A DNA stretch of 64,000 bases from NCBI GenBank assembly GCA_028826165.1, contig JAPDFW010000069.1, positions 310,001 through 374,000 of the forward strand. Direction: 5' to 3'. The notes under the pieces were generated by a model, which saw only the letters and a program-made list of their open reading frames with translations, searched no databases and had not been told where the DNA came from. How positions within the stretch are numbered: the stretch's first letter is position 1; every line of letters begins with the position of its first letter. Of the stretch, positions 6,501 to 52,839 are shown in pieces. Source of the DNA: Anaeramoeba ignava BMAN (taxonomy: Eukaryota; Protista; Anaeramoebae). Position numbers and translations under genes: made by a program.

Positions 6501-9500
6501 AAAGAAATTGAAAACTTATCCCAAAAAGCAAATCAAATGGAAAATGAAGATTCTTCAAAAATAGAATCCATTTCTCTTCTTCAAAATGATCTTGAATCCA
6601 AAAACAAAGAAATTGAAAATCTTAATTCACAAATAAACGATTTGAATCAAGAAAAACAAAATTTAAAAAATGAGATTGCTCAATTAAATGAAAATAATAA
6701 AGAATTTGAAAATCAAAACAACCAAATTTCTGGATCATTAGAAAATATGAAACAAGAATTCCAAGAAACATATCAAGAACTTCAAAAAGTAATTCTTGAA
6801 TACAAACAACAAGCTTTGAATGACAATCAACAAATTGAAAACCAACTGCAAAATATTGCCAAATTAGAAAAAGATAACCAATTATTGAGCGAAAATTTGA
6901 AACAAATTGAAAATCAAGAAAATTCTCAATTCCAAAATTTACAATCAAAAATCAAGAAGAATGAGGAAAAGAAAAAAGAATTAAAACAACAAATCGAAAA
7001 ATTACAAAATCAAAACGAACAAACAAAACAATCATTGATGAAATTGGAAAAACAAGTAGGACATTTAAAAGTGGAAAACCAAAATTTAATGAGAGTTAAA
7101 GAACAATTATTAAATCTTAAAAATCAAAACGAATCAACAATCAAAGAATATCAACAATCACATGAAAAAGCACAACAATATATTAACGAACTTAAGCAAA
7201 ATCAAACTCATGTTTTCACAAACAGCGAAAGACAAAAACAAGATTTATTAGATCTAGCTCAAGAAAGAGAAGGTCTTGAAAATGAGATTAATAAACTAAA
7301 AGATATGAATCGCCAAAAACAAAATGAAATTAATTTATTGCAATCTGAACTTATTGAAGCCAAAAATAAAATTGATGAGTTGAACGAAAATATACAACAA
7401 CTTGCAAATGAATATACCTCAAAAATACAAGAAATTGTTGGTCTTTCACAAACTACAACATTAAATCAAAATGGATGGGAAAATCAACAAAATCAAATGA
7501 AAGAATTTTTCAATTCTCAAATTGAAAAACTTCAAAAAAAACTGAATAAAAATGCCAAATTAATTGATGAATTACGCAAAGAAATTGAAAACAAAGATCT
7601 CGAAATTATGCAATCAAAGAAAGATATTACTAATTTAAAAATGGCTGAAAGTCAGAATAATGAATATTATGAACAAGCTATTGATGAACTAAATTCCAAA
7701 ATTGCAGAAAAAGAATCCATTTTAAGAAACTTAAATTTTGAAAGTGATAAAGCTCTTCAAGAAAAAACATCCACAATCGCAGAAAATTATCAACAAGAAC
7801 TTCAAGAAAGAGATTCATTACTTAATATTATCAACGATAAATTACAGCAAATTGTTTCTGATCCAAATTTATTAAGAAGTGATTTAATGAACCAGCAATT
7901 CAAAGGTTTATCTTCAAATTTTATTCTTTTGAAAACAAATATTTTACAAAAAATTAATCATCTTTTGGATTATAAATTGGAATTGGAAAGAAAGAAAAAA
8001 GAAATTGATAATAAATTGAGCAAATTTTCATCAACAGTGGATAATAAATTGAATGAACAAAAAAGAAAAAACGAAGAAAACGAAAAAAGAATCAAAGATT
8101 TAATGTCACATTTGAAAGCTTTAAGAGAACTTAATCAACAAAAAACCCAAGATTTAGTTTCTGCTCAAGACATGATTCAACATTTAGAATCAGAAAAAAC
8201 ACAAGCAGAAAGCACTATGTTATTATTATCACAAGATGTTTCTTCCAAAACTAATAAACATGAAAATGCAATTCGAGAAATTAATTCATTGAAACAAACA
8301 CGAAAATCACTTCAAGATAAAATTTTACAAATTGAAAAACATCTTAATGAAAAAATTGATAGTCAACAAGCTATTCTGAAAGAAAGAAATGAAATTGCTC
8401 AAGAAAATGAATCAATGCAAAAAGAAATTTCAAACTTGCAAAACGAATGCCAAAATTTACAAAGAGAATACACAAAAATTGAATCTGAAAGAGATGATTT
8501 ATACAAACAATTAGCAAGTCTTCAAGAAGAAAAAGAGCAAATTGAAAGTGATTTTTGAACAAAAGAAGCAGATTATCAATCCAAAATTGATTATTTAAAC
8601 AAAAAATATGAAGATCTCCGAAATGAACAAATATCATATTCAAATCTTAATAAGGAAAATCAACAATTACTAAGAGATTTTAGAGAAATTCAAACTGAAA
8701 GAAATACTTTATATTCTGAAATTAAGCAATTACGCAAAGATAAAAGTGAACTTCAATCTGATATACAAAAATTGCAATTTCTTGTTAGAGATTCAAATAA
8801 TTTGAAATCTGATTTAGAAAGTTTTCAAATTCAAATCAAAATGAAAGAACAAGAATTGGAAGAAAAAGAAAATGAAATTTTAAAATTAAAAATGAAACAA
8901 AAACAAAATGAGAATTATGAATTGAAATTAAAAGATGAAGAATTGGAAGAAAAAGAAAATGAAATTTTAAAATTAAAAATGAAAGAAAAACAAAATGAAA
9001 ATGAAATTTTAAAATTAAAAATGAATGAACAAGAATTGGAAGAAAAGGAAAATGAAATTTTAAAATTAAAAATGAATCAGAAACAAAATGAAAATGAAAA
9101 TTATAAATTAAAAATGAATGAACAAGAATTACAAGAAAAACAAAATGAAATTAATTCATTAAATTGGAAATTGCAAAATCAACAATCAAAATTAAAAGAA
9201 TTAGATGAATTGAATCAAGATCTTGAAACAGAAAACAATAAACTAAATCAAGATATGAATGAATTACAAAAACAATTATCAATCGCAGAAAAAAAAATAC
9301 AAGAAGCATTAAATCCTCTTCCAAATTCAACAATAGATTCAAATTCACAAAGAAGTCTTGATTTAAATTCAATTCAAAACCCAGATTCTCAAAAAGGAAT
9401 TTTCTCAAATTTCAAATCAAAATTATCAACACTTAGTAAAGAAAACCAACCAAAATCAACTGAAATGAATTATTCATCTCCAATTTATGCAGCAAATATT

Positions 9501-10361
9501 CAATCAAATCAAAAACCATATATTGAAAGAAAATCACCAACAATTCCAAATTATTCAATAACCAAAAATTTGAAAATTTCTCCAAAATTAAATGAAAATC
9601 CAAATCCTAAAAATTTGAATAATTATACACATCTTTATCCTAATAGTTTATCAAGCGTTCCATCAGAATTTGATAATTTATCCTTTCAATCTGATCTTGA
9701 AGAAGAAAAATTATTGGAAAGAACTCAAGGTTCACCATCAAAATTGGAGAACGAACTTGATAAGATAATTATAGACCAAGTTGAAAAAATGCAAAAAGTT
9801 ATGAAAAAATCACATGATAAACTTGAAAAAAATCGATTGGATTACATAAAAGAACAAACAAAGAAATCAAAACCAGCAAATATTATTAGACAAGCAAAAT
9901 CAGCAATAACAGGAATAAATAAACCGTTAAGTAATTTATCAAATAAAAACAATTTGCAAAGAAATTTCAATCAAGAATTTCAATCACCAAAAGCTATAAA
10001 TCCAATTAGAAATCATTCAAATTTTAATTTCCAAACAGGAATTCCAAAAACAGAACCAAAAATCAAATTAAAACCTCTTTTCAACAAGAATTCTTTCCAA
10101 AATGATAATAATTTAAATCAAAATGATAATTTAATTTTAGAAAGTAATTCGTTTAAAAGTGATGAATTTACAAGTAATTCTCCAATTCCAATTAGAATCA
10201 AAGAACAAAATGAACAAGAAAAAAAATATTTTCCTTTTCAATCACATTTAAATTCAAAAACAAAAGAAATTGAAAATGATCCAATTGAAGAAATTTCAAA
10301 ATTATCAAAAGGTTTAAATTTTTTACAAAATCAATTAAAACAGTATTCTAATAAGAAATAA
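3520..10361 (+). CDS. Centrosomin/CDK5RAP2/Mto1-like gamma-tubulin-complex receptor (CM1 motif plus long coiled coil); exons 3520-3609, 3940-4232, 5681-10361
   Basis: Splicing GT-AG introns 3610-3939 and 4233-5680 gives SLKTQGN|TIEGLNKENFELKLKIYYLEDEL (CM1/Cnn_1N motif) in frame with ORF 5805. ORF 8772..10361 is in the same frame, separated by a single TGA at 8556-8558. Confidence 0.8.
4255..5670. repeat. Intronic ~15-bp minisatellite (TTAAATTAAATTATT/GTT)n
   Basis: Directly visible tandem array filling intron 2 of the CM1 gene. Confidence 0.9.
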
Positions 10362-10414: not shown

Positions 10415-11864
10415 ATGAAAATTTTGATTTTGTTTTTTCTCTTTTGTTATTCTTTCCAAAACCAACTTCGCCCAATAATTGGAATTCTAACACAACCATC
10501 TTTACAAGAAATTGAACCTTATGGTGAACAATATATAGCTAGTTCATATGTAAAATTTGTTGAAAGTGGAGGAGCAAGAGCAGCGCCAATAAAATATAAT
10601 TTAGAAAAAACAGAATTAGACAAACTCTTGAACTCAGTAAATGGAATACTTTTTGCTGGGGGAGATTATAGAAATTTGAATCCAGGAACGAAATATTCTG
10701 AGACAATCGAATATATATTTGATTTTGTTATTGATAAGAATAATAAAGGAATCCATTTGCCTCTTCAAGGAACTTGCATGGGATTTGAAGCTCTTTGTCT
10801 TGCTGCGACAAAGAATCATAGCGTGTTTTCTCGTGTTAATATGGAAAATATTTCAGTGCCTTTGGATTTTATTGGAGGAGATCCTAAAAAAATTTCGAAA
10901 TTATTTAAAAATGCAAGTTATGAAATTATTGATATTTTGAAATTTAAAAATGTTACTTTGAATAATCATGTTAATTGTGTTGAATTTGATGTTTTTGAAA
11001 AGAATTCTCAATTAACTACTATGTTTCATCCTATTTCTATTAATACTGGTGGTTTATATAATTTAACATTTGTTTCAACAATGGAAGCATGGGATTATCC
11101 AATTACAGGAACACAAGTATTTATAAAATCCAATCAAAATTCAATTATAAAATTAAAATTAAAATCAAAATTCAATTATAAAATTAAAATTAAAATTAAA
11201 ATTAAAATTAAAATTAAAATTAAAATTAAAATTAAAATTAAAATTAAAATTAAAATTCATTTATAAATTAAAATTAAAATTAAAATTAAAATTAAAATTA
11301 AAATTAAAATTAAAATTAAAATAAAAATCGGATAAAAAATTAAAATTAAAATTAAAATTAAAATTAATATTAAAATTTAAATTAAAATTAAAATAAAAAT
11401 TCATTTATAAATTTAAAATTAAAATTAAAATTAAAATTAAAATTAAAATTAAAATTAAAATTAAAATTAAAAATTAAAAATCGGATAAAAAATTAAAATT
11501 AAAATTAAAATTAATATTAAAATTTAAATCAATATTAAAATTAAAATTAAAATTAAAATTAAAATTAAAATTAAAATTAAAATTAAAATTAAAAATCGGA
11601 TAAAAAAATATTCTTCATTTTGTTTAAAAGTGGCATCCTGAAAAAAATGTTTTTGAATGGAATCCAAATGAAGATATAAATCATTCAAAATATGCTATTT
11701 TAATAACTCAATTTATCTCAAATTATTTCATTAATGAATCTCGTAAAAATAATCAATCATTTCCAAATCAAGAAGAAGAAGAAAAAGCTTTAATTTATAA
11801 TTATACTCCTTTATATTCAGCTTCTTTTATTCCAGATTTTGAACAAGTTTATGTTTTCAATTAA
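10415..11864 (+). CDS. GGH: Gamma-glutamyl hydrolase (peptidase C26) with signal peptide; exons 10415-11116, 11631-11864
   Basis: RPIIGIL, YIASSYVKFVESGGAR and catalytic GTCMGFE. YPITGTQ|WHPEK is restored by GT-AG intron 11117-11630, which is filled with (AAAATT)n. Hydrophobic N-terminus. Confidence 0.92.
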
Positions 11865-14066: not shown

Positions 14067-16599
14067 TTAAATGAAATAAGTCTCAAGTTCATCAACAATC
14101 CATTTATTATAAGAACCAGCTAAATAACTTTGAGGTTCATTTGATTGATAATTAATTCCATTAGGTAGATTATAACTTTCACCAAAATTTGAATAACCAG
14201 ATTTTAATTTAGAATTTAACCGAATATCATCTATAAATATTTTAATAAAGATAAATAATTAATTTTAATAATAATTAATAATAATTTAATTTAAAATTAA
14301 TTTTATTTTAAATTTAAATAATAATATTATTTATTATATTAATATTTTGGATTATTTATTAATTTAATTTTAATTATAATAATAAATATTTATTAAATAT
14401 AAATTATTTACCATCTATTTTAATAAAAATAAATAATTAATTTTAATAATAATTAATAATAATTTAATTTAAAATTAATTTTATTTTAAATTGAAATAAT
14501 ATTAATTATTTATTATATTAATATTTTGGATTATTTATTAATTTTATTTTAATTATAATAATAATTATTTATTAAATATAAATTATTTACAATCTATTTT
14601 AATAAAAATAAATAATTAATTTTAATAATAATAAATAATAATTTAATTTAAAATTAATTTTATTTTAAATTTAAATAATAATATTATTTATTATATTAAT
14701 ATTTTGGATTATTTATTAATTTAATTTTAATTATAATAATAATTATTTATTAAATATAAATTATTTACAATCTATTTTAATAAATATAAATAATTAATTT
14801 TAATAATAATTAATAATAATTTAATTTAAAATTATTTTTATTTTAAATTTAAATAATGATATTATTTATTAATTTAATTTTAATTATAATAATAAATATT
14901 TATTAAATATAAATTATTTACTTCCAAAAATTGGACCATAATGTAAATGATAAAAAATTGCGACATTTTCGTTTCCTTTTTGAATTGTAAACTTTTCTGG
15001 TTTTCTATCTCCTTTATCATTTCTTAATGAAAAAATAAATGCATTTGGATCTGGAATATTTCCATAACCATAATTTGGATAATCTAACTTTGAATCTGAA
15101 TCTAAATCTGAATCTGACTCTGATGAAAGAGAAAATGAATCATCTTTATTCCATTTTGATTTATCAGTTGTCCATCCAACTTGAGTAAAACCTCCAAAAA
15201 TAAAATTATCTTTTGTTTTGATAATAACTAATGTTTTTCCTTTATTATCACATTTTGAATGCCATTTTTTAGAATTAAATCCATCTTTTTTTGTTGAAAA
15301 TCCTTTTTTCATTTTAGAAAAAAAATCATTATCATTTATCCATTCTTGTAATTTCTTAACATATTCAATATCTTTAATAATTTTTGAATTTGAAAAAATC
15401 TTCAACAATTTAAGATTTTGAATTTCTTCATCTTTTTGTTTGAGAATCTTTTCTTTCTTTTCAATTTCTTTATCTTTCTTTTGATTTTCAGATTCAAATG
15501 ATTTGATTCTTTTATCTCTTCTTTTAATTTTATTATCTTTCTTCTCAACTTCTTTCTTCCATTTATCTTCAATTTCCTTTTTTTGTTTGTCATTTTCTGA
15601 TTTCAATTTTTGATTCCATTGTTTTTGTTTTTCAGTTTTAGATTTCAAATCTTGATTCTCCTTTTCTTTTTCTTTAATTTCCTTTTCTTTTTCTTTGATT
15701 TTCTTTTCATTTTCTTTGATTTTCTTTTCTTTTTCTTGATCTTGAATTTGAAAAATAGTTCTTTCAAAATGAATTAAAAAAGAATTTGGAAGAAAAAAAT
15801 CAAATTGTTTTAATTTATCAAAATCTTGTTTTGAAATTGAATCTTTATCAAATAATGAAAAAAAAGAATGAAATAATCTTTTCTTTGCATTCATCTTGTG
15901 TTTATATTTCTTTAATTTTAATGATTTAACTCTTTTTTCAATCCAATTATTTAAAAATTGAAAAAAATCAAATTGAAAAATTTCTTTTTTTTCTTGTTTA
16001 AATTGAATAAATTTGATAATTTCTTCTTTAGTTAAATTGAATAAATTCTCATTATTTTGAATTTGGGAAAAATTTTGATTTATTAATTCAAAACATTTTA
16101 TTTCAATTTCATTTGAATTTAAATTTCGATTTTGGAATAAAAATTGGAAAAAATTTGAATAATTAATTGAATTTAAAATTTTTTTTTGAATAATTTCTTT
16201 CAATAAATTTAATTTAAAATAAATTGAAATTTCCAATAATTGAATAAGATTTTCTTGATTCTCAAAAGAAATATTTCCATAATAAATATAACTCAAAATT
16301 GATTCCATTTCTTTTTTATTAAATTGATTTAAAGAAATTTTATCAATATCGTTTTTTCCTCTTAAATACTTATTAAAAAAAGGAGATCTTGAAGATAAAA
16401 TTGATTTATGAACTTTAATTTCAAAAGGATTTGATTTATTCTCAACAAAAATTGAAAAATCTTTAAATGAATTTCCTTTTAAAAGGTTTGAATAATCTTT
16501 AATTAAATTTTTTGTTACTTTTTTTTCTAAATTTTTCATTTCATTTTCATTTTCATTTTGATTTGCATTTTCAATTTGGTTATTATTATTATTATCCAT
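14067..16599 (-). CDS. BTB/POZ - coiled coil - TLDc domain protein; main exon 16599-14922, last exon 14230-14067
   Basis: BTB: FKDFSIFV..IKVHKSILSSRSPFF..ILSYIYYG. TLDc: KDGFNSKKWHSKCDNKGKTLVIIKT..FIFGGFT..AFIFSL..YGPIFG. The C-terminal exon DIRL..YLAGSYNKWIVDELETYFI* completes the TLDc domain. Confidence 0.9.
14231..14921 (-). repeat. Intron made of four tandem 150-181-bp intron units separated by AG|NNN|GT
   Basis: Minus-strand junctions TAG|ATT|GTAAAT (14771-14769 and 14593-14591) and TAG|ATG|GTAAAT (14414-14412). Confidence 0.85.
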
Positions 16600-18744: not shown

Positions 18745-21700
18745 ATGCTTTCAATCGAACAAATTTCAACAACACTTCTCAATAGCCAAAGATTTATTCC
18801 TTACATTTCACTTGATAAACAATTATATCAACCAGGAGAAAACATTTTCATTCGAGCAGTAGTTTTAAATTCTTTTACAAACGAACCATTAATTGATCCA
18901 AATGTATTAAATCAACTCAAAAATGCAAAAATCAAAATTCAAGATGCAAGAGATCAAACAGTTTTAGAAGAAGATTTAAAATTGGATAATATCAAAGAAA
19001 GTAGTGTTTATTCATATTGTTGGAAAACCGATGATTCAACAAAAGGAGGAGAATATAAAGTGGTTATTTCTCATTTTATTTCTGATCAATTATTTTCATC
19101 TGAAAGAAAATTTGTTATTAGACCTTTTAGAATTCCAAGATTGAATAAGAACATTGAATTTCTTAAGCAAAGTTATTCAGAAAAAGATGAAGTTGAAGCT
19201 ATTTTATCAGTTCAAAGAGTAGAAGGCGAAAATAATAAATTGGAGGAAATTTCTGTTACTTATCAAGTTAAACATGAATCTTATTCTTTTAAAACTGAAA
19301 CAAAAAATCTTGATTCAAAAGGAAAATTATTGATTAAATTTACTTTGCCTTCTGAAATTAAATCTGATATTGTTTTGAATTGTGTTATTAAGGACGGAGA
19401 TGTTCAAGAAAATGCAATTAAAAACGTTCCTGTTGCTACTTCAAATTTTGATGTTTTTTTCTTTCCTGAAGGAGGAAATTTGGTTTATGGAATAAAATCA
19501 AGAGTTTATTTTGAAGCAACAAATGATATCAATGAGCCAATTGATTTGGAAGCAGAATTAGTTTCTTCAAACAACGAAACAGTTAATCAAAATATCATTT
19601 TAAAAACTCAACATGAAGGAAGAGGATTTTTTGAATTTACTCCCCAAAACGATAACAAATACTCTTTGAAAATCATCAAACCAAAACAAGATATCATCTC
19701 ATCAATACCTTTACCTAGAATTCTAAAAGAAGGAGTTTCAATGAAAGTTTTAAAACCCTCATTTTCATTTGGAGAAGAAATTGAGATTGAAATGATTTCT
19801 TCTTATTCAGGAAATTTCAAAGTGGGATTATTTAAAAAGGAAATTGAGATTGGACAAGAATTAGTATCAATTTCAGAGGATCAAAAATACAAGCCAATTA
19901 TTGTTAAAATTTCACCAAAAAATGAAAAATACCAACAAGGAATAATAAGAATAACAATTTACAAAGTTGAACAAAAAGAAAATCAAAAAATACTAATTAT
20001 TCCAACAACAGAAAGATTAACATTCATTAAACAAAAAAGAGAGCTTAATTTCAATATTAAACTTAATAAAGAATCTTATATTCCAGGTGAAAAAGTTGAA
20101 ATGATTATTGAAACAAAGGATCAAAACAATGAACCAATTAATTCAATTTGTGGAATAACAGTTACAGATAATTCAGTTTATGAAATGACTGAAAAAGCTG
20201 ATCGAAATCCAAGTTTATTTTCTATGGTTCATTTAGAAAATGAAGTATTAAAATTTCATGATTCTGAATCCTATCTTGATTCTAATGATGAAATTAGTCA
20301 AAGTATTTTTTATTATTTTTATATTTTTATTTAAAAAATTAATTTATTTTATTATTATTTTTATTAGAAAAACTTGATCTTTTACTTGGTATTCAAGGAT
20401 GGAGAAAATTTATTTTTTCAAGGAAAGTTCCAATCATTTTCAAAAATCAAGAACAAATTATGAAAGCTTTTGTAATTCCTGAAAACATTATCAATTTCCA
20501 AATTAAACATGATCAAGATTCAATTTCTCTTTCTTGTCTTCCACAAACACCTTTAATCAAAATCAAAGAACTTATTGAAAAAGGATTTGATATTCCAATT
20601 TCATCTCAATATATTTTCAAAGAAAAAGAATATCTTTCAGAAAATGATAAATCAATAAATGAATTCAAAATTATACAAGATCAAGAACTCAAAGTTTTGG
20701 ATTCAAGAAAAACTGGAGAGAAAATATTCGTTAATGTTCTTGATACTGATTTGGTTTCATTAGATTATAATCCAAACAACAAAATTTCTTTTGTTAAAAA
20801 ATATTTTGAAGAAAAGGAAGGAATAAAACAACAAAATCAAACAATATTTTTCCAAAATGAAAAATTAGAAGATGACAAAACATTAAATGATTATGGAATA
20901 AAACATGGAGATGTACTTAAAATCGATTCAAGTGAAATTATGGTTGAAATTCATTGTTTTAAATTTGAAACAATGAAAATTTTTATTGATCCAAAAGAAA
21001 CTGTTGGAAAAGTGAAGCAAATTATCGAGGAAAAACTAGGATTCTTTCAAATTCAACAAAAACTCTATTTCGACAATAAAATTTTGGAAGATGATAAAAC
21101 TATTCAAGAAAGTAACGTCAAACATAAATCAAGAATGCTATTTTTTCTTAAAAGACTCGAAAATTTAAAAATGAAAGTTAAAGTTCAACATTTTGAGAAA
21201 ATTATTGAATATGAAGTTTTTACAAATGAAGAAATCTATAAATTAAAAGGAAAAATTGAAAAAAATTTCAAAATTCCCTATGGCAAACAAAAATTATTTT
21301 ATAATCGAAGTGAAATTTCAAGTTATGATTTTGAAGGTAATATGATTCCAAATAATGCAATTATGCATTTAATTACAGATGAAGATGGAGATAGAGATTT
21401 GAAATTAACTATAAAAAATGATTCCAAAAATGAAGAATATCAAATTGAAACAAAATTTGGAGCAACACTTGAAGAATTAAAAGAAATTATTGAAAAAAAA
21501 GTAGGGATTGTAGAAAACAAACAAATAATTCTCTTCAATGAAAAAGAAATTTTTGATTTAGATAAAAAATTACTTTATTATTTAATCAATAATGGAGATG
21601 TTATTCATGTTCGAGAAAATACAAATCAAGATCTTTATTTTGATATCAAGATTCAACCAGTTTCAGGAAAACCTTTTCCAGTAAATGTGAAAGAATCAGA

Positions 21701-24666
21701 CAAAATCAGATATTTGAAAAAACAAATCCAAAAACAATTACAAATTCCTTTTGAAAAACAAATTCTTTTTTATAAAAGAAAATATTTGAATGATGTATCA
21801 ACTCTATCATCCGTTTCAATTTTCAAGAAAGATTCAAGTAATGTTTTAATTCAAATGGTTGATCCTAACATTAAAGCTATGATTAATATTTCGATGCCTG
21901 GTAATGAAAAAACAGTACATCAAATTGAATGTGAAATTGGAAAAACAATTGATGATTTGAAAAAATTAATGGATGCAAAAAAAATTGTTTCAGAATCCTT
22001 TGATTTATATCAAACTTCGCACCATTATCTTACAGAAAATCTAATATTAGCTTCTTTAATTTATCCATCAGAAAATTGGGAAACATTTTTGAGTTTAGAA
22101 TATTATTCATTTAATTCAGGCCAACTTTTTGTTAAAACATTAACAGGAAAAACTCTCACACTTGAAGTTAAAGCAGATGATACAATTGAAAACGTAAAAG
22201 AAAAAATTCAAGATAAAGAAGGAATTCCACCAGATCAACAAAGATTAATATTTGCAGGAAAACAATTGGAAGATGCAAGAACTTTGAGAGATTATCGAAT
22301 CCAAAAGGAATCAACAATTCATATGGTTTTGAGATTAAGAGGAGGAGGAACTGTAGAAGATATGGGAGAAATAGCATATGGAAATCAATTGGAAGAGGAT
22401 AATCAAATGCAAGAATCTGGGTTAAAATTAAATGATAAAAAACCTCTTGATATTGAGATTGAACCATTTGCAAGAGTTTATTCTCATAAATTGATCAAAA
22501 TCGAAATTAAAGATAAAGAAAGAAAAGATTTCACAAACACAATTTATTGGAATCCATCAATAAAAAGCAAAATTGAAAATGAAAATCAAGTTAAAAAAAG
22601 TTCAGATTTTAAAATTGAATTTGAAACAAATGATTCAATTACTTCATTCAGAGTTTTAATTGATGGATTTACTAATGATGGAATGATTGGAAGTTCGAAT
22701 TCTTTTGTTTTTGCTTCAAAAAAACCTTTTTATATTGAACCTAAATTACCACTTGAAGTAACTTATGGTGATGAAATTAACTTTCCTGTTTATTTTGTGA
22801 ATAATTTCCATAATCTTTCATTGAAAATTAAAATGGATATTGAAGCAAAAAATTTGAAATTAAGTGAAAACAAAAAACAATTTGAATTAAAACCAAATGA
22901 AAGATTTGCAGAATTTATCAAAGCAACAATTTTAGAAAGTAAATCAAAACTAATTTCCAAAAACATTCCAATCAAAATTACAGCAAAATGCATTGATAAT
23001 CCATCTATTCAAGATTCAATCACAAAGGAATTGAAAGTTGTTCCAAATGCATTTCCAAATCATTTCAATTATTCAGGAATTCTTTCAAACAAAATCAAAA
23101 AAATTGAGAATAAATTTAAACTTCCTTCAATGATTCCAAAAAGTTTAACTTTCTCAATTCAACTTTATCCAACAATTCTTGCTAATTTTACAGAATCAAT
23201 CAAGAGTTTAATTCAAGAACCTTATGGATGTTTTGAACAAACATCAAGTGTTCTTTATCCAATGATAATGGCACAAAAATACTTTAAAAAAACAGGATAT
23301 GATGATTTAGAACTAATTCAAAAAGCAAACACTTTTATTCAAAAGGGATACAAGAAATTAATATCATATGAATGTAAAAATGGAGGATTTGAATGGTTTG
23401 GAGATGATCCAGCACATGAAGCATTAACATCAATGGGAGTTCTTGAATTTCTTGATTTATCAACAATATTTTCAGTTAATCAAGAAATGATGCAAAGAAC
23501 AACAAGTTGGTTAATTTCTAGGAAAGATGAAGAATCAAAATCATTCAAAAAAAATGAAAGAGCATTAGATTCATTTGGATATGCACCTCAACACACAACA
23601 GATGCTTATATTATTTGGTCTTTATCAGAAGGAAAAATTGAAACTGAGAAAATTGGAGATATTATTCAAAGACTTTATCAAGAAACACATAAAGAACATG
23701 AAAATGATCCATATTATATTGCATTAGTTTCAGCAACAATGTTCAATACAAATCAAAATGAACAATCATTGGAATTGGGTAAAAAATTAGTTAAATTTCA
23801 AGATAAAAAAGAAGGATTTATTTCTGATTCAAAAACATCAATTACATCATCAAAAGGATCGAATTTAATCATTGAAACAACATCTTTAGCAATTCTTTGT
23901 TGGATAAAACATGGAAAAGAATTCAGTAAGAATATTACTCAAGCAAGTGAATGGATTTTTTCAAAATGTTCATCAGGAAAATTTGGATCAACTCAATCAA
24001 CTGTTTTAGCATTAAAAGCTTTATCTGCTTTTGAAGATTTTTCTGCTAAAGAACAAAAGGAAGAAATTTTGATTAATTTATCATTTGGAAAAACAAAAAA
24101 ACAAATTGAAATTGGAGAAAAACAAGAAGATTTTCTTGAATTCAAATTTGGAAATGAAATTTTTAAAAATGAAAAGGAAGTTGATTTTGGAATTGAATTA
24201 AAAAAAGGAACAATGATGAGATTTTCAACAAGATTTGATTATTACACAGAAAAACCAAAAGATTCAACAAAATGTCCATTATCAATTTCCACAAAATTAA
24301 AAGAAGAAAAGATGAAATTAGGAGAAACATCAGAAATTCATGTTTCAGTTGAGAATTTGGAAAATCAAGAATCAGGAATGGTTGTAGCCATTATTGGAAT
24401 TGCAGGAGGAATTGAAACAAGATTTGAACAATTACAAAATCTTGTTAAGAAAGGAATTGTTTCTTCATTTGAATTGTTTGGAGCAAGACAAGTTGTTTTT
24501 TATTGGAGAGGAATGAAGCCAAATCAAAAAATTGAATTTGATATTGAAGTACTTGCAACAATTCCAGGAAAATTTAAATCATCTCCTATCAAGAGTTTAT
24601 TTGTATTATGGAGATGAAGAAGATAAGAAATGGATTGAACCTTATTCTATTCAGATTTTCAATTAA
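18745..24666 (+). CDS. Alpha-2-macroglobulin-like thioester protein with eight ubiquitin-like domains in the bait region; exons 18745-20302, 20368-24666
   Basis: MG2 motif [24 protein letters not shown] and [10 protein letters not shown]. The 65-nt GT-AG intron 20303-20367 joins to [14 protein letters not shown]. Post-bait [12 protein letters not shown], thioester EPYGCFEQT and [14 protein letters not shown] follow. A probable 1-nt error near 24588 hides the C-terminus [26 protein letters not shown]. Confidence 0.9.
22119..22346 (+). other. Near-canonical ubiquitin domain embedded in the A2M bait region
   Basis: [17 protein letters not shown]...[17 protein letters not shown]...[14 protein letters not shown]. 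By manual comparison 64/76 residues match canonical ubiquitin. Confidence 0.95.
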
Positions 24667-24739: not shown

Positions 24740-26515
24740 ATGAATGAAATTTTATTTTTTGGTATAAATGAAAAACCAAAACTTTTCAAAAATGAACCAA
24801 AAATAATAACAAAACCAATTCAATTTAAATTTGAAAATGAAAATGAAAAACAAATTAAACAAATTTTAACAAGTCAATTTTCAACAATTTTCCTTTTTAA
24901 AAATGGAAAAGCAATAGAATATTTAAATGATGAAAATTCAAATCAAAATCCACAAGAAATTCAAATTGAAGAAAATATTCGAAAAGTAACTGTTGGTGAT
25001 AGAAATGAAGCTATTTTAACAAAAGAAGGAAATGTATTTGCCAAAGCAAAAGGTATTAATCCAGATAATCCAAATGAATTTATCAATATTTCATCATTAA
25101 TTAAAGATACAAATGATAGAATAATTGAAGATATTGTTTCTGGAAGAAATTCAATTTATTTATTAACTTCAAATCAAAATGCTTATGGAATTGATTCAAA
25201 TCATTTTTGTCAACTTGGTTTTGATTATAAAAAACTTGAAAAAACAGAAAAATCAATTTTAATGATGAAAAATGTTTCTAAAATATTTTCAGGAAATTCT
25301 TCAGCTCATGTTTTTCTTTTAAATTCAAATCAAGAATTATTTGGATGTGGCAATAATTATCATAGACAAGTTGGATTAGGAGAATCAAGAAAAGAAAAAA
25401 AAATCCAAGAACTAACAAAAATCCAAAATATTCCAAAAGGTAAAATAATTGATATTCAATGTGGATTTGCTTATTCAGTAATGTTGATTGAAAATGAAAA
25501 TGAAAATGAAAATCTAAAAAGAAAACTTTATTCATGTGGTTATTATGGATTAAATGGACTTGGCAAAGATAAAAATACTTATGAATTTACTGAAATCAAA
25601 TCATCTTTATTTGAAAATGATGATATTATTGATTTTTCTGTTGGAAATGCTCATACTTTGATTTTAACATCCAATTCAAAATTTATTGTATTTGGATATA
25701 ATAAATATGGTCAATTAGGAGCTGAAGATCGAAATAATCAACCAATTCCAATTCAAATTGAACTTCCTAAATTAAGATTTAATGAAAATATTTTCAATTA
25801 TCATATTTCTTGTGGATTTAACAAATCATTTATTTATTATTCTCCTCTTTCTTTTTCCAATCTTGAAGAAGATTTGATAAAATTATTTAGAAGAAAAGAA
25901 TTTTGTGATATTTCATTTAAAACCAAAAATGGAGAAATAATCAAAGCTCATAAATTAATATTGAAATATAGATTAAATCAAAATCAAAATGAAATTGAAA
26001 AACTTCAAGAAATTATTTCAAATAAATCAATTAAAGAATCAAATCAAATATTTGAAATGATTTATTCAAATAATTCCAAAATAAATCCAAAATTATATTC
26101 TGAAATTAAAGAAATTATAAATTCAAATGAAAGAATTGAAGAAACAATGAAAAGAATTTATTTAAATGAAAATGAAAATGAAAATGAAAAAGATTTTATT
26201 ATTGAAAGAAAAGAAAAACAATATAAATTTCCAAAATTAATATTAATAATGAGAAGTGAATTATATCGAGGAATGTTTTTATCTGTAACAGATGATACTT
26301 CAAATAAAGTTACAGATTATAGTGAATTAAGTAATAAATCATTTCAAATATTAGAATATTGGATTTATTCAAATCAAATTAAAGATGGAATTCAAATTAC
26401 ACAAGAAATAATTGAAGAAATTCAAATTGGAATTGATTATTTTCAATTAAATCAAACAAATCCAAATTTATTTGATTTATTAATTAATAAATTTAATAAT
26501 CAAAATCAAAATTAA
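24740..26515 (+). CDS. RCC1-repeat beta-propeller plus tandem BTB protein, copy 1 (intact)
   Basis: RCC1 repeats (GCGNNYHRQVG, FSVGNAHTLILT..FGYNKYGQLG). BTB motifs EFCDISF..IKAHKLIL and LIMRSELYRGMF..LEYWIYS. Confidence 0.88.
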   Translation: MNEILFFGINEKPKLFKNEPKIITKPIQFKFENENEKQIKQILTSQFSTIFLFKNGKAIEYLNDENSNQNPQEIQIEENIRKVTVGDRNEAILTKEGNVFAKAKGINPDNPNEFINISSLIKDTNDRIIEDIVSGRNSIYLLTSNQNAYGIDSNHFCQLGFDYKKLEKTEKSILMMKNVSKIFSGNSSAHVFLLNSNQELFGCGNNYHRQVGLGESRKEKKIQELTKIQNIPKGKIIDIQCGFAYSVMLIENENENENLKRKLYSCGYYGLNGLGKDKNTYEFTEIKSSLFENDDIIDFSVGNAHTLILTSNSKFIVFGYNKYGQLGAEDRNNQPIPIQIELPKLRFNENIFNYHISCGFNKSFIYYSPLSFSNLEEDLIKLFRRKEFCDISFKTKNGEIIKAHKLILKYRLNQNQNEIEKLQEIISNKSIKESNQIFEMIYSNNSKINPKLYSEIKEIINSNERIEETMKRIYLNENENENEKDFIIERKEKQYKFPKLILIMRSELYRGMFLSVTDDTSNKVTDYSELSNKSFQILEYWIYSNQIKDGIQITQEIIEEIQIGIDYFQLNQTNPNLFDLLINKFNNQNQN

Positions 26516-26824
26516 AATAAAAATTAAAATTAAAATCAAAATCAAAATAAAAATTAAAATTAAAATTAAAATCAAAATTAAAATTTAAAATTAAAATTAA
26601 AATTAAAATCAAAATTAAAATTAAAATTAAAATTAAATTAAAATTAAAATTAAAATTAAAATTAAAATTAAAATTAAAATTAAAATTAAAAATTAAAATT
26701 AAAATTAAAATTAAAATTAAAATTAAAATTAAAATTAAAATTAAAATTAAAATTAAAATTAAAATTAAAATTAAAATTAAAATAAAAATTCAAAAATCAA
26801 TTTTTCATTTTTTTCTTTTCAAAA

Positions 26825-28480
26825 ATGAATGATTGTTTATTTTTTGGTTGGAATAAATATCCAATTCTTATTAAAAATAAACCAAATAAAATAACAAAAC
26901 CAATTCAATTTAAATTTGAAAATGAAAATGAAAATGAAAATGAAAAACAAATTAAACAAATTTCATCAGGAAGATTTTCAACAATTTTCCTTTTTGAAAA
27001 TGGAAAAGCAATAGAATATTTAAGAAATTCAAATCAAAATCCTGAAAAATCCAAATTGAAGAAAATATTCAAAAAGTAACTGTTGGTGTTCAAAATGAAG
27101 CTATTTTAACAAAAGAAGGAAATGTATTTGCCAAAAGGATATGATGTTAATCCAAAAAATACAAATGAATTTATCAATATTTCATCATTAATTGAAGATA
27201 AAAATGATAGAATAATTGAAGATATTGTTTCTGCAGATGATTCAGTTTACTTATTAACTTCAAATCAAAATGCTTATGGAATTGGTTCAAATCAATATTG
27301 TAAATTTGATTCTGAAACACTTAAAAAAACACAAAAACCAATTTTAATGATGAAAAATGTTTCTAAAATATTTTCAGGAAATGCTTCAAAATATGTTTTT
27401 GTTTTAAATTCAAATCAAGAATTATTTGGGTGCGGATATAATTATTATGGTCAACTTGGATTAGGAGAATCAAGAAAAACAACAAAAATCCAAAAATTAA
27501 CCAAAATCCAAAATATTCCAAAAGGTAAAATAATTGATATTCAATCTGGAGGTGATCATTCAATAATGCTGATTGAAAATGAAAATGAAAATCTAAAAAG
27601 AAAACTTTATTCATGTGGTTTTATAAATATAAATGGACTTGACAAAGATAAAAATACTTATGAATTTACTGAAATAAAATCATCTTTATTTGAAAATGAT
27701 AATATTCTTGAATTTTCTGTTGGAAATAACCATACTTTGATTTTAACATCCAAAGGGAAATTTATAGTATTTGGAGGTAATTCTTGGGCACAATTAGGAA
27801 CTGGAGATACAAATGAGCAATCAATTCCAATTCAAATTGAACTTCCTAAATTAAGATTTAATGAAAATATTTTCAATTATCATATTTCTTGTGGATTTAA
27901 CAAATCATTTATTTATTATTCTCCTCCTTCTTTTTCCAATCTTGAAGAAGATTTGATAAAACTATTTAGAAGAAAAGAATTTTGTGATATTTCATTTAAA
28001 ACCAAAAATGGAGAAATAATCAAAGCTCATAAATTAATATTGAAATATAGATTAAATCAAAATCAAAATGAATTTGAAAAACTTCAAGAAATTATTTCAA
28101 AAAAATCAATTAAAGAATCAAATCAAATATTTGAAATGATTTATTCAAACAATTCCAAAATAAATCCAAAATTATATTCTGAAATTAAAGAAATTATAAA
28201 TTTCAAATGAAAGAATTGAAGAAACAATGAAAAGAATTTATTTAAATGAAAATGAAAATGAAAATGAAAAAGATTTTATTATTGAAAGAAAAGAAAAACA
28301 ATATAAATTTCCAAAATTAATATTAATAATGAGAAGTGAATTATATCGAGGAATGTTTTTATCTGTAACAGATGATAAATCAAATAATAAAGTTAGAGAT
28401 TATAGTAAATTTCAAATATTTGAATAATAAATCATTTCAAATATTTGAATATTGGATTTATTCAAATCAAATCAAAAGAT
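26825..28480 (+). pseudogene. RCC1-BTB copy 2, frameshifted (pseudogene or consensus errors)
   Basis: Collinear with copy 1 but split into ORFs 26825, 27122 and 28227. The 3' end decays into AAAATT repeats. Confidence 0.65.
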
Positions 28481-28701
28481 GAAATTAAAATTATTCAAAA
28501 CAATTAAAATAATTAATTAAAATTCAAATTGAATTGATTATTTTAAAATTTAAATCAAAAATTTAAAATTAAAATTTATTTGATTTTAAAATTAAAATTA
28601 AAATTAAAATTTAATAATCAAAATTAAAATTAAAATAAAAATTAAAATTAAATTTAAAATTAAAATTAAAATCAATTTTTTTCATTTTTTTCTTTTCAAA
28701 A

Positions 28702-30470
28702 ATGAATGATTGTTTATTTTTTGGTTTAAATAAAAAACCAAAACTTTTCAAAAATGAACCAGATAAAATAACAAAACCAATTCAATTTAAATTTGAAAAT
28801 GAAAATGAAAATGAAAATGAAAATGAAAAACAAATTAAACAAATTTCATCAAGTTTATTTGCAACAATTTTCCTTTTTGAAAATGGAAAAGCAATAGAAT
28901 ATTTAAATGAAGAATATTCAAAACAAAAACCTGAAAAAATCCAAATTGAAGAAAATATTCAAAAAGTAACTGTTGGCTATTGTGATGAAGCTATTTTAAC
29001 AATAGAAGGAAATGTATTTGCCAAAGGAAATATTAATCCAAAAAATCCAAATGAATTTATCAATATTTCATCATTAATTGAAGATAAAAATGATAGAATA
29101 ATTGAAGATATTGTTTCTGGAAGTTATTCAATTTATTTATTAACTTCAAATCAAAATGTTTATGGAATTGGTTCAAATCTGGAGAGTCAACTTGGTTTTG
29201 ATTATAAAAATTTACAAAAACAAAAAAACCAATTTTAATGATGAAAAATGTTTCTAAAATATTTTCAGGAAATGCTTCAAATCATGTTTTTCTTTTAAAT
29301 TCAAATCAAGAATTGTTTGTATGCGGATATAATCAATATGGTCAACTTGGATTAGGAGAATCAAGAAAAACAACAAAAATCCAAAAATTAACCAAAATCC
29401 AAAATATTCCAAAAGGTAAAATAATTGATATTCAATCTGGAGGTGATCATTCAATAATGCTGATTGAAAATGAAAACCAAAATCCAAAAAGAAAACTTTA
29501 TTCATGTGGACCTTATGGATTAAATGGACTTGACAAAGATAAAGATACTTATGAATTTACTGAAATAAAATCATCTTTATTTGAAAATGATAATATTCTT
29601 GAAATTTCTGTTGGAAATAATCATACTTTGATTTTAACATCCAAAGGGAAACTAATAGTATTTGGGAATAACGATTCTGGTCAATTAGGAAATGGAAATA
29701 TAAATGATCAATCAATTCCAATTCAAATTGAACTTCCTAAATTAAGATTTAATGAAGATATTTTCAATTATCATATTTCTTGTGGAAATCAAAAATCATT
29801 TATTTATTATTCTCCTTCTTTTTCCAATCTTGAAGAAGATTTGATAAAATTATTTAAAAGAAAAGAATTTTGTAATATTTCATTTAAAACCAAAAATGGA
29901 GAAATAATCAAAGCTCATAAATTAATATTGAAATATAGATTAAATCAAAATCAAAATCAAATTGAAAAACTTAAAGAAATTATTTCAAATAAATCAATTA
30001 AAGAATCAAATCAAATATTTGAAATGATTTATTCAAACAATTCCAAAATAAATCCAAAATTATATTCTGAAATTAAAGAAATTATAAATTCAAATGAAAA
30101 AATTGAAGAAAAAATGAAAAGAATTTATTTAAATGAAAATGAAAATGAAAATGAAAAAGATTTTATAATTGAAAGAAAAGAAAAACAATATAAATTTCCA
30201 AAATTAATATTAATAATGAGAAGTGAATTATATCGAGGAATGTTTTTATCTGTAACAGATGATAAATCTAATAAAGTTAGAGATTATAGTGAATTAAGTA
30301 ATAAATCATTTCAAATATTTGAATATTGGATTTATTCAAATCAAATTAAAAATGAAATTAAAATTACACAAGAAATAATTAATGAAATTAAAATTGGAAT
30401 TGATTATTTTCAATTAAATCAAACAAATCCAAATTTATTTGATTTATTAATTAACAAATTTAAAAATTAA
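28702..30470 (+). CDS. RCC1-BTB copy 3, one frameshift in an A-rich run near 29210-29230
   Basis: ORFs 28702..29238 and 29238..30470 together align end to end with copy 1. Confidence 0.8.
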
Positions 30471-30522: not shown

Positions 30523-33500
30523 TTATTTTCGAAGTTGAATATTAGAAAATTCATTTTTTAAAAATTGATTAGATTCTCGTTGATTCCCATTTAAAGAAGT
30601 TACTCTTCTTAATGGTTGGTTAAAAAAAAATCCATTTGTTACTTGAATTTCTCTTTGTGTTTGCATCAATCTTTGAATATTTTGATTTTGATTTTGATTT
30701 TGATTTATATTTTGATTTATATTTTGATTTATATTTTGATTGTAAATTGGAATTGGAATTTGATTTTCATTTTGAATTGGCAAAGGATTAAATATTAAAT
30801 TAAAATCTGATAATTTTTCAATTTTAATGGTTTGATTTGAAGAATTTATAAGCTCAAGATTATTTGAACCATTTGAATGAGCATCCATGAGAGAAATAAC
30901 TTGTTTCCATTCATTGCAATTAGAAAATGTTGATTTCTTACCGAATATAAACATTCCAACTCTTGCTCTGCTTGTCAAAACTGTTATTCGATGATTATCT
31001 CTTAAATGAGGAGAAGGTCCAAATCTTTGAGTTGAAACAAGACTGACCAATACAAAATTACTCTGCAATCCTTGAAATTCATCTGTTGTACAAATTTGTC
31101 TTGGAATCATGTTTTCATGATTTTTGAAGTCTTCTTGGAACATGTTTGAAATGAGTTGTCTTTGCTTTCGATATGGAGTTAATATTGCGATTGATTTTCT
31201 GGAAATGCGATTTTTTAATAAGAATTTTGTAAATAATATGATCCATTTTACTTCCTCAATATTTTCTTCATTGTTTGATTCCGAATTCTGGACATCAACA
31301 AACTGAACACGATATTTCAAGAACGGGAGCGGTTCTTGGAAAAGTGGGCTTTGAGTGATATTCGGCAAGTCTCCTAAAACTTCGTCTTTTTGGTAATTTT
31401 GATTTGGATCGTCTGTCTTTGTTTTGTATCTCCATCGATAGATATCCGCAATTTCTGGGATTGCTCTTCCTTGTTTATTAAGGATAATTCTTGGAATTTT
31501 CAATTTTTGAAGACGATAAAACAATGAATGATGATATTCCTTGCGTGATTTTAATTCCTGGCTTTTTATCAATGGTGTTAATTGCTTGTGATCGCCAACA
31601 AGAATAATTCTTTGAGGATTCAATGAAATCAATGGAATACTTTCTGTTTCCAAAATTTTGCTTGCTTCTTCCATAACAAGCGCTTCAAAAGTATAAGTTG
31701 TTAAATGGCTACTGAAAAGAGCAATTCCTGAGCATGTTCCCGCAATTATTTGTGATTGAAGTAGTAATACTTCCATTTGTCTGTGTTTTTTCAAGCTCAA
31801 AACTTCGTAAATATTTTTCAAATATTGAAGATCCTCAACCAAAATATCAAATTCCCTCTTTTCATCGCTTTGAATTGTTTTGTGGATGATTTTGTTCATG
31901 AAAGTGTTGATTTTCGTCATTGATTCTTGACATGATTTTGGTGGTATTTGTAAATTATTAAAATCCAAATGCTGGATATCATTTTCAATTGGCATCATTT
32001 CATCTTGTTTTTTCTCACACAATTCCAATAGAAACGCAAACTGCGGTTGAGGCAAATGGGAGTAAAGCTCTGCAAACAACTTTCCCAATTCACCGTCATA
32101 ATTTGAATATTTATGGAAAATCATGACCAAATGCATGAACTTCCTTTCAATTTGTGATTTTGCAGAACATTTGCTTGCAACTTCAAGTTTGCTTTGAGAA
32201 CCAAGTCTCAAAATTCTAGCTTCGCGCTTTTTAAAAGCACTTGAATCATCTGGTATATCGATAAGTCTTTCAATAATATGATCCAACGCGAGATTGGAAT
32301 GAGCTGAAATGAGAATTTTTTGGTTATCTAACGGGAAATTTTTGTTCATCATTTGGATTATTGAAGCAACTACATCAGTTTTTCCTGTTCCTGGCGGTCC
32401 AGTAATCAATGTTACTCGATTCACCAGTGAACTTATTAGTGCGCTTCGTTGTAAAGAATACAGTTGAAGTTGATTTGGTTTCACATTTCCAAATTCAATT
32501 CTTAAAAATTCTTGTGAATTAAATGAAAGTTGACAAAATGTTCGAAAATTTTCATCCTTCAATCAAATCAATATGTGTTTTTTTTTTTGATAGAAATAAT
32601 ATTTAGTTTAAATTTAAATTTTCATTTTGATTTTAATTTTACAATCAAAATTTGGAATTGTTTTCCATTATTTTTTAAAAGACTTGCAAGATCTTGAACA
32701 TCAGAAATTCTTCCTTCAAAATTAATTGTATCAGGCCATTTTGAATTTGGAAGTAAATGATAAAAATCCTTTTCTCCTGAAATAAATAAAATAAAAACAA
32801 AACAAAACAAATTTTTTTTGTATCTAATGAATTAATTTATCAAACAAAAGCTTTTTCTTCCAAAAACATTGAATAAAAAATACCCAATAATATTCTTTCA
32901 ATTTCTGGTGGAAAAGGAGTTTTTTGCTTGATCATCCTTGAAATCAACTCCAAAATCCTAACATTTGCAAATAAACTTGGATGAATATTAAATGCAAAAT
33001 TAATTTTTTTTGGATCCCATTTTCCTGAATGGAAAAACTGACCATCATTTGGAAATAATTTAACTGTAACTTCATAAAAATTTTTCTGTTTTCCATTCAA
33101 TTGATTTTTTTCAGTTTTCATTTCACAACCAAGAAATTTTGTGCCAATAAAATACATCACATCTTGATTGTTTTGATTGATTGCTCCAATAAAAATAAAT
33201 GTTGGAGCCATATCTTCCATTGTATGTGAACGAAAAGATAAAGGGCGATTGACAATCAATTTAATTTTATTTCTACTTTTCAATGGAAATTCCACACTAT
33301 CCACATAAAATAAATTTTTGCCTTGATCCGATTGGAATTCGGACCAAATATTTGCTGCTGTTGATGCTTTAAATAAAACAAAATTGCGGATTAAATAATC
33401 TTTTATATTTAAAAAAAGTGAGCCCAATCTGGGTAAAAATTGAGATCCATTAAATAAATCTTCAAAATATTCATGATTTGGAAGTGGATTTTCAACACCG

Positions 33501-46400: not shown

Positions 46401-46656
46401 TAGAAGAATTAAAGTGACAAAAGATGAAATTCTTCAAATTCTTACTTCAAAATCAATTCCAAAAGAAAAATTCTCTCAAAAAACTCAAGAACAAATGAAT
46501 TCACTTGGAAAAGGAAATGTTATTTTTGTTTTGGAAATGAATGATCCAGATAAAAATGAGATTTATGTTTCTGGAAATGTTGGAATTAAAAATATAATTG
46601 GTTTTGTTAAACAAGATGATTCTAAAAGTTTACTTCATGAAATGAACCAATTATAA
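43471..46656 (+). CDS. NSUN2: tRNA cytosine-C5 methyltransferase NSUN2/Trm4, multi-exon
   Basis: FENYYK|LQQIV..PLPTTFRI, ILDICAAPG|SKT, VVANDIDSKR, FDRVLCDVPC|TCDGTFRK, KPGGKIVYSTCSLNPIEDEAVV and RFLPHFMNTGGFFVAVL. Confidence 0.9.
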
Positions 46657-47312
46657 CTCAATTTAGACAAAGAATTAAGTTTATTTCTTTCCCTTTTTTC
46701 ATTTTTTTTTTTTAATCGTTTTTTTTTTTTAGGGGATTTATTTTAATTTTGGTTGAATCAAAATAAGAACATTCCAAATAAAAAATTTTAATTAAAAAAA
46801 AAAATAAATTAAAATAAAAAAGCAAAAAAAAAAAAAATGGAAAAAAAAAAAATAAAAAGATCTATCATTCTCTTTTTTTAAATTACTTTAATAAATTTAA
46901 ATAATTTTATTATTAATTTATAAATAAAATTTAATTAAAATAATAAAAATTAATTAAAAAAAAAAATTAAAAAAAAAATAAAAAGAAATAAAAAGAACAA
47001 GGAAAAAAAACCCTTTTGCTTTTTATTCAAAGTTTTAATTTTAAATCATTTCTTTTACTTATTTTTAATTTGTTAGGTTTTTTTTATTAACTAAATTAAT
47101 TAAAAAAAAAAATTAAAAAATAAATTTTAAAAACAAAACAAATTTTTTTTTTTTTTTTTTTGATCATTTTTTTTTCTCTTTTTATTTTTTTTCTTTTTTC
47201 TTTTTGTTTTTTTTAATACAAAAAAAAAAGCATTTAAAATTTTTTTTTTTTTTACAATTCTTTTCTATTCTATTCTTTTCTTTTTATAATTTTAGTTTTG
47301 AAAGAAATAAAA

Positions 47313-52512: not shown

Positions 52513-52839
52513 AAATTATTTAAAAAAAAAATACAATTTAGAATTCTTCAAAAAAACAAAACAAAACAAAACAAATTTTATATTTTTTTTAATTAAATCA
52601 ATAATGGTTTTGGAAAAAAGAAAAAAATTTCCAAAATAATTTTCTTTTTTAGATAAAAATAGTTTCATCAAAAAAATTAATTCTTTTTCATTTTTATTTT
52701 GTTTTAAAAAAGAAAAAAAGATAAAATAAATTTTGATTTGTTTCTTGATTAAAAATTAAAAAATTAAAAATGAAAAAAACAAATGAAAAAAAAATGTGAA
52801 AAACTTTCAAAAAAAGAAAAGAAAAGAAAAATATGAAAG

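Follow-up and report, generated by a model that had tools for sequence, protein, structure and literature searches.

The 64,000-nucleotide stretch of Anaeramoeba ignava DNA analysed here (the window; contig JAPDFW010000069.1, positions 310,001 to 374,000, eukaryotic, 20% G+C) carries a gene for a protein of the alpha-2-macroglobulin (A2M) superfamily in which an array of ubiquitin-like units stands where these proteins have their bait. This architecture is real, is kept across two species and is undescribed in the literature searched. We read the product as a thioester protein of the A2M family that resides in the cytosol, has a ubiquitin-like (Ubl) array in place of its bait and would be triggered by a di-glycine-specific protease, that is, a deubiquitinase (DUB) or a Ubl protease, and we give this reading about even odds (roughly 0.5). 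The DUB-triggered function is one that we infer from the sequence together with the known A2M mechanism.

A ubiquitin-like array in the bait position

Searched exon by exon, the spliced gene gives Pfam matches in the order MG2 and the end of A2M_BRD in exon 1, followed by ubiquitin, A2M/MG6b, TED and A2M_recep in exon 2. The array is flanked by the A2M_BRD and A2M matches, in agreement with the bait position assigned to it in an initial annotation of the window. In the post-bait half, profile positions 1-692 of 708 align to residues 732-1457 of human A2M, the best solved relatives by profile being CD109 (E 2e-44) and A2M itself (E 2e-41). RKDF aligns to R732-K-Y-F735 of human A2M, directly after the human bait, and the plug residues R and F are kept. 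From the end of the array to RKDF there are 58 residues, and the cleavable region thus falls between the linker and the alpha'NT plug. The motifs that flank the bait stand 705 residues apart in this copy, as against ∼110-220 in relatives that lack ubiquitin.

The copy in the window is called C70 below, and the other ubiquitin-bearing A. ignava paralogs C59, C24 and C74, each after its contig. Six stretches of exon 2 pass as Pfam ubiquitin (E 1.8e-69). With a ubiquitin profile for diverged units, units U1-U6 and U8 score 12.5-136 bits, above every shuffle; U7 is borderline, at 5.2 bits against 4.9 for the best shuffle, and its counterpart in C74 reaches E 1.3e-5. Where the initial annotation had counted eight ubiquitin-fold units, the array is therefore seven clear units and one degenerate unit, U7. 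Only U8 is near-canonical, as had been claimed: it has 12 substitutions in 76 positions relative to host ubiquitin and retains F4, L8, I36, R42, I44, H68, V70, all seven lysines and the LRLRGG terminus, with Gly next after the GG. Compared with polyubiquitin, U8 has a dN of 0.12 and a dS of 0.59, which indicates purifying selection. The design is not that of a polyubiquitin precursor, since U1-U7 are diverged and without GG, and the true polyubiquitin genes lie elsewhere, on contig C75.

The thioester motif GCFEQ (23226-23240) is intact, as first annotated, and aligns with GCGEQ of CD109, C4A and A2M. At the catalytic position, where CD109 has His and the alignment to A2M falls in the region of its Asn, the A. 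ignava protein has the Asp of RALDSF. Under the known His-versus-non-His rule the residue at this position indicates thioester reactivity, and because it is Asp and not His, the alignment points to a thioester that would react with amines. Pfam found neither the ANA nor the C345C domain of complement C3/C4/C5, and the protein ends after MG8. The group closest in sequence is an unstudied CFEQ subfamily at 33-38% identity, found in Planctomycetes and other bacteria, mostly metagenomic and Planctomycetes where named. By sequence, the product belongs to the A2M superfamily, without being a classical secreted inhibitor. An AlphaFold2 model of the A. flamelloides ortholog has five beta-grasp units between strand-rich flanks, at a pTM of only 0.35, and fold searches with it returned ubiquitin matches only; single-sequence AlphaFold of exon 2 of the A. 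ignava gene gave a pLDDT of 31.

Cellular location

A hydropathy scan, as distinct from a trained predictor, found no hydrophobic leader in the product (best 13-residue hydropathy 0.68), which supports the earlier statement that signal peptide and lipobox are missing. Such a leader is present in 83 of 91 full-length prokaryotic-type relatives and in none of the Anaeramoeba copies read. Nearly all paralogs without ubiquitin start with Met-Gly, several with Ser or Thr at position 6, like myristoylated proteins, whereas the ubiquitin-bearing and Snf7-bearing paralogs lack this start. The predicted cytosolic location of the protein is well supported by sequence. The ubiquitin-less Anaeramoeba A2Ms with Met-Gly starts (L017-L023, P0004-P0009) have low-complexity charged baits and no signal peptide. 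Leaderless relatives also occur in Protostelium and Cantina, and a Pelomyxa relative has an N-terminal membrane anchor.

Paralogs, orthologs and origin

Twelve A2M loci were found in the A. ignava genome. In four of them (C70, C59, C24 and C74) the bait holds an eight-unit array, in seven it is of low complexity and charged, and in one (C116) a multi-exon Snf7 occupies this place. The C116 paralog (L024, ∼46361-52900, minus strand) combines an intact CFEQ with a Snf7/CHMP4-like unit that Pfam Snf7 matches on two separate exons (E 2.4e-7 and 1.9e-5). Host-protein modules have thus entered this A2M bait twice, once as ubiquitin and once as Snf7. In A. flamelloides, both sequenced strains have an intronless A2M with five Ubl units in the bait. 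A quick tree of the post-bait half, with the insert excluded, joins the five ubiquitin-bearing proteins of the two species in one clade (SH-aLRT 99), which sits inside an Anaeramoeba group apart from the prokaryotic and other protist rows. The simplest reading would be a single origin of the ubiquitin bait before A. ignava and A. flamelloides split. Among 261 homologs in a local scan, the best of thousands, ubiquitin was found in Anaeramoeba proteins only, and the ESM Atlas gave no A2M-plus-ubiquitin cluster among the matches listed. A homolog search with the A. flamelloides bait region was dominated by polyubiquitins and has no bearing on absence elsewhere.

Some further observations concern these copies and their relatives. 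The flanks of the C59 and C24 genes, looked at in a synteny check of alleles versus paralogs, belong to multicopy families. C59 has a frame change in a poly-A run within unit 1 (L014:3926-3989), probably a long-read error. Long prokaryotic-type homologs (P0261, P0283, P0373 and others) have an anti-sigma-like zinc-finger N-terminus and two predicted membrane-spanning segments inside the bait, so the bait tolerates large inserts in bacteria too.

It could be supposed that a polyubiquitin-like gene was inserted into a permissive loop, was tolerated there and is now decaying with no special function. The A. ignava genome indeed holds at least 127 ubiquitin-like matches, many in long frames, and to the acceptance of long inserts in bacteria may be added the frameshifts in the C70 and C59 assemblies and the thioester Cys lost in C74. 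A decaying insert is nevertheless hard to square with a design kept in five genes of two species in one clade, with the purifying selection on U8, or with the coverage of the bait region in spliced, RNA-type runs, and we consider this explanation very improbable. Other long frames with ubiquitin-like units (∼500-820 amino acids) lie at C13:437967, C71:429991, C59:369346-376370, C70:305130-307518, C85:203812, C64:1021553 and C87:123309, and Ubl clusters lie ∼22-29 kb upstream of both the C59 and the C70 A2M genes.

Conservation of the di-glycine in a fast-changing last unit

In the four A. ignava copies the last unit ends in LRLRGG, LLLRGG, WRLKGG or IRLIGG, each followed by Gly, so that L73, G75 and G76 are constant while R72 and R74 vary. 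The identity of these units to ubiquitin ranges from 44 to 85%, being 44-45% in two of them, and only one further GG occurs in the four arrays, at the end of U7 in C24. The U8 of C70 is 49% identical to its counterpart in C59 and 63% to that in C24 (dS 0.38 and 0.39), whereas the thioester domain (TED) is 98 and 95% identical in the same comparisons (dS 0.03 and 0.10). With 93-98% identity in the A2M body, the last unit is the fastest-changing part of the protein, as bait regions are. The terminal cassettes thus greatly predate the bodies in which they sit, a pattern that suggests exchange among copies together with last-unit variants that were kept for a long time. The dN/dS of the last unit is not above 1, and by that measure there is no sign of positive selection.

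The kept terminus also bears on the possibility that the array is an address or disposal tag, which would bind ubiquitin receptors (proteasome, Cdc48 cofactors, autophagy or ESCRT adaptors) and thereby position the A2M, as myristoylation or Snf7 would do for the other paralogs, the true bait being the unstructured 55-64-residue tail, cut by leaked lysosomal or bacterial proteases. The tail is variable and long enough for a bait, and the last A. flamelloides unit has no GG. Snf7 is an obvious membrane-targeting module and is not known as a protease bait, and the ubiquitin-bearing clade lacks the N-terminal Gly of most ubiquitin-less paralogs, as though the array had replaced a targeting signal. 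Integral Ubl domains, however, usually lose their GG. This holds for U1-U7 but not for the last unit, whose LxGG survives in each of the four A. ignava copies over the whole range of identity given above. A tag of this kind is in our view unlikely, although it deserves to be taken seriously.

Gene model and reading frame

The initial annotation had described a spliced A2M reading frame of about 1950 amino acids. Its domain order and its intron (20303-20367) stand: contigs of X1 and X2, runs that come from two studies, are spliced at this intron, and those of the two DNA runs are not. The assembled frame, however, is 1935 amino acids long, owing to one extra base at 24587/24588 that shifts the frame to a stop at 24617; the family C-terminus continues in the next frame to 24666 (∼1951 amino acids), and C59 and C24 read through. 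The NCBI model, met in the homolog search, likewise has 1935 amino acids and is named merely 'polyubiquitin-like'. In the C70 copy the extra base at 24588 may plausibly be an assembly error. A read-level deletion at 24588 was rejected as proof of such an error, since the short-read contigs without this base carry the C59/C24 letters at most variable sites.

Contigs of X1 and X2 that are identical to the C70 copy cross both the U7-U8 join (21870-22231) and the join of U8 with the tail (22238-22479). Misassembly of the array is excluded by these contigs, by the four A. ignava loci on different contigs and by the two A. flamelloides strains. Nor is the array spliced out: there is no credible skipping joint, and the long apparent skips have sides of 20-21 bases and occur mostly in the DNA runs too.

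Proposed trigger and its alternatives

A2M-family proteins are triggered once the bait is broken, whereupon the alpha'NT segment that follows it withdraws through a channel between MG2, MG3 and the linker; no particular bait sequence is required, and F735 helps to hold the native state (PMC9352918). By such a mechanism, a DUB would bind the last unit and cut after G76, and the freed, unfolded 58-residue tail would slide back through the MG2-MG3-linker channel. The molecule would then collapse and the thioester would react, probably with an amine, cross-linking the DUB or a neighbor, while units 1-7, which lack GG and are tied to the MG ring, would remain attached to the adduct, where they could serve as a DUB-resistant ubiquitin-like tag or offer further binding sites. 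Because a folded Ubl left on the downstream fragment would block the channel like a stopper, only the last junction would need a GG, and the LxGG kept on the last unit in A. ignava matches a last-unit-only trigger. Differences in the last unit would suit the individual paralogs to different DUBs.

The related A. pumila has a Legionellales symbiont with a Dot/Icm system and 184 predicted effectors (10.64898/2026.04.11.717937), and Legionella injects ubiquitin-modifying enzymes, DUBs among them (PMC7830128). For the trigger itself, a foreign enzyme, that is, a bacterial or viral DUB, is a tentative suggestion, and a host USP is a doubtful one. It is likewise possible, and we put it forward with reserve, that cytosolic thioester traps with host-protein decoys (ubiquitin variants, Snf7) form an intracellular complement-like defense derived from a bacterial-type A2M, which would capture bacterial or viral DUB effectors covalently and leave a DUB-resistant ubiquitin-like tag on them. 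The intracellular DUB trap or sensor of the initial annotation thus stands as to bait position, predicted location and the LxGG kept under divergence in four paralogs, while thioester formation, cleavage and capture are predicted and a foreign target is one candidate: U8 keeps the DUB-binding face and the host USP repertoire is large, so that host enzymes would be just as able as foreign DUBs to cut U8.

Several points weigh against a DUB-triggered trap. Longer baits predispose human A2M to collapse (PMC9352918). The Legionellales symbiont is that of A. pumila and not of A. ignava, and no DUB is mentioned for it. With 140 Pfam UCH matches and dozens of USP genes in the A. ignava genome, host USPs could spend the trap at once, the canonical DUB-binding face of U8 being intact. 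The tail of 55-64 residues exceeds the entire human bait in length and, in the manner of a generic bait, could be open to cleavage by proteases of any kind. In both A. flamelloides strains, LRLRGG and LKLKGG end units 3 and 4 and the last unit ends in VVRSG, which breaks the last-unit rule. C74 (L016:3731-8170) keeps its LxGG and has Gly instead of the thioester Cys, so covalent capture would not be needed in every copy. At its pTM of 0.35, the A. flamelloides model does not resolve MG6 pairing around the array, and the A. flamelloides and C74 rows form long branches in the tree.

If host DUBs cut the protein routinely, cleavage could be a maturation step, after which either an activated, C3b-like thioester would mark nearby surfaces (e.g. 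a symbiont or prey vacuole) by attaching a preformed Ubl chain to them or the N-terminal half, with its free Ub-GG, would be conjugated through E1. Ubiquitin fusions are normally cut in the eukaryotic cytosol, host USPs are many, and U8 retains the seven residues F4, L8, I36, R42, I44, H68 and V70 as well as the whole tail, with Gly after the GG. R72, which ubiquitin E1 reads, is on the other hand Leu in C59, and an early constitutive cut would leave the channel unplugged, which should cost the protein its thioester; CFEQ is nonetheless intact in three of the A. ignava copies and in A. flamelloides. Maturation of this kind seems to us distinctly unlikely.

Ubl and Snf7 modules are classic unfoldase substrates, and this fits a mechanical trigger, in which an AAA unfoldase (Cdc48/p97 or the proteasome for the Ubl units, Vps4 for the Snf7 paralog) would pull on the insert, drag the plug and spring the thioester without proteolysis. 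Although PMC9352918 leaves non-proteolytic triggers open, it also requires a discontinuity of the chain; moreover, an internal loop has no free end, and the kept GG would go unexplained, which makes a mechanical trigger highly improbable.

As a separate observation on DUBs of the host genome, single-frame USP-family genes of ∼302-306 amino acids occur at nine or more scattered sites and fall into two groups of nearly equal score (C128:88078, C105:158640, C1:1084687, C80:249344, C24:736899, C59:7413, C48:41695, C96:45721 and C90:146239). This pattern suggests a mobile element carrying a DUB, which would be a possible endogenous target of the trap.

Features of the gene and the window

The features of the gene are collected in Table 1. 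Its neighbors in the window are ordinary or multicopy genes (MT-A70, peptidase C26, BTB-TLDc, RCC1-BTB with similar downstream repeats, UPF1-like helicase, Kelch-BTB and RhoGEF), and no functional link between them and the A2M gene was seen. Positions 5805-10361 hold long low-complexity frames without Pfam matches, from a repeat family present on many contigs.

Table 1. Parts of the ubiquitin-bearing A2M gene and neighboring frames, in window coordinates
Feature	Position	Strand	Basis
Exon 1: N-terminal macroglobulin domains through first MG6 half and start of linker; no signal peptide, lipobox or N-terminal Gly	18745..20302	+	Pfam MG2 (E 7.8e-11) and end of A2M_BRD; hydropathy; same start in C59 and C24
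Intron, 65 nt, GT..AG (exon 2 from 20368 on)	20303..20367	+	Spliced out in X1 and X2 contigs; C59, C24 and C74 have a similar break here
End of linker, with 13-residue family motif directly before the bait	20368..20483	+	D-L-L-L, Q-G-W-R and F invariant in 56 homologs
Ubiquitin-like units U1-U7 (U1 20484-20717, U2 to 20936, U3 to 21170, U4 to 21398, U5 to 21638, U6 to 21875, U7 to 22118), diverged, none with terminal GG; U7 (21876-22118) degenerate	20484..22118	+	Pfam; local unit profile; paralog comparison
U8, near-canonical ubiquitin (64/76 to host ubiquitin) ending in LRLRGG; proposed cut site after G76	22119..22346	+	Pfam; both joins in identical contigs
58-residue tail, acidic and variable at first, with a conserved FARVYSH-type motif after that; corresponds to C-terminal bait plus alpha'NT plug	22347..22520	+	55-64 residues in all ubiquitin-bearing copies; R-x-Y-x-H kept in family
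RKDFTNT, second MG6 half, MG7, first CUB part	22521..23216	+	Profile alignments to human A2M and CD109; Pfam A2M
TED, with GCFEQ at 23226-23240 and Asp of RALDSF at catalytic position	23217..24059	+	Pfam TED (E 3.9e-27); alignments; CFEQ in 120/120 homologs
Second CUB part and MG8; extra base puts last 25 codons out of frame in assembly	24060..24666	+	Pfam; reading frames; paralog comparison; short-read contigs
Neighboring frames	272-1108, 10415-11266, 14914-16599, 24740-30470, 30523-32562, 41474-43207, 57666-60065		

Relation to known systems

The initial annotation knew of no A2M with this design, and none was found in the searchable literature, where, with limited coverage of subscription papers, no paper joins Anaeramoeba and macroglobulin or treats an intracellular Ubl- or Snf7-baited macroglobulin. 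Neither ubiquitin nor macroglobulin is mentioned in the main text of the genome paper (PMC11550330). With the monomeric A2M-family inhibitors (A2ML1, CD109, insect TEP1 and bacterial YfhM/ECAM) and with human A2M, the Anaeramoeba protein shares the order MG-LNK-bait-MG6b-MG7-CUB-TED-CUB-MG8, a CxEQ motif and the R/F plug residues. It differs from them in having no signal peptide or lipid anchor, in its CFEQ with Asp at the catalytic position, and in a bait of ∼620 residues of folded Ubl where theirs has ∼40 disordered ones; the short, disordered and promiscuous bait and the signals for secretion or periplasmic location of classical A2M are not found in the gene product. In the ANA arrangement of complement C3/C4/C5, as in the cut proposed for U8, specificity for one protease comes from a folded domain of ∼76 residues that immediately precedes the cut site and the alpha'NT plug, but in the Anaeramoeba protein the domain is ubiquitin and not ANA, C345C and secretion are lacking, and the protease proposed is a DUB and not a convertase. 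An engineered-bait A2M, the tabula rasa protein, has a bait that can be swapped freely to choose the triggering protease (PMC9352918); there, artificial short peptides sit in a secreted tetramer, whereas here a natural folded array sits in a predicted cytosolic protein.

Polyubiquitin, ubiquitin-fusion precursors and multi-Ubl proteins (ISG15, FAT10 and OASL) share the head-to-tail beta-grasp units and the terminal LRLRGG; in the C70 array, by contrast, the units are diverged, LxGG is on the last one only and the whole is internal to a split MG6. In integrated-decoy or tripwire sensors (plant NLR integrated domains, PBS1, NLRP1/CARD8), a built-in host mimic or cleavage site detects an enzyme, and the mimic evolves fast. 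No sequence or fold is shared with these sensors, the output here would be thioester cross-linking and not signaling, and a foreign trigger is only proposed for the Anaeramoeba protein.

Thioester proteins of the A2M family are known from extracellular or periplasmic settings. A cytosolic branch with a folded host protein as bait would extend thioester chemistry to intracellular defense or to the control of ubiquitin, and this in a protist that is free-living and has bacterial symbionts. The design also offers a direct test of the channel-retraction trigger, under which no cut other than the one behind the last folded unit should be effective. If the proposed function is true, the Anaeramoeba protein would be a naturally occurring covalent DUB trap, genetically encoded and given its specificity by an exchangeable ubiquitin variant, and hence a useful tool, and such proteins would amount to natural proteinaceous activity-based probes for deubiquitinases.

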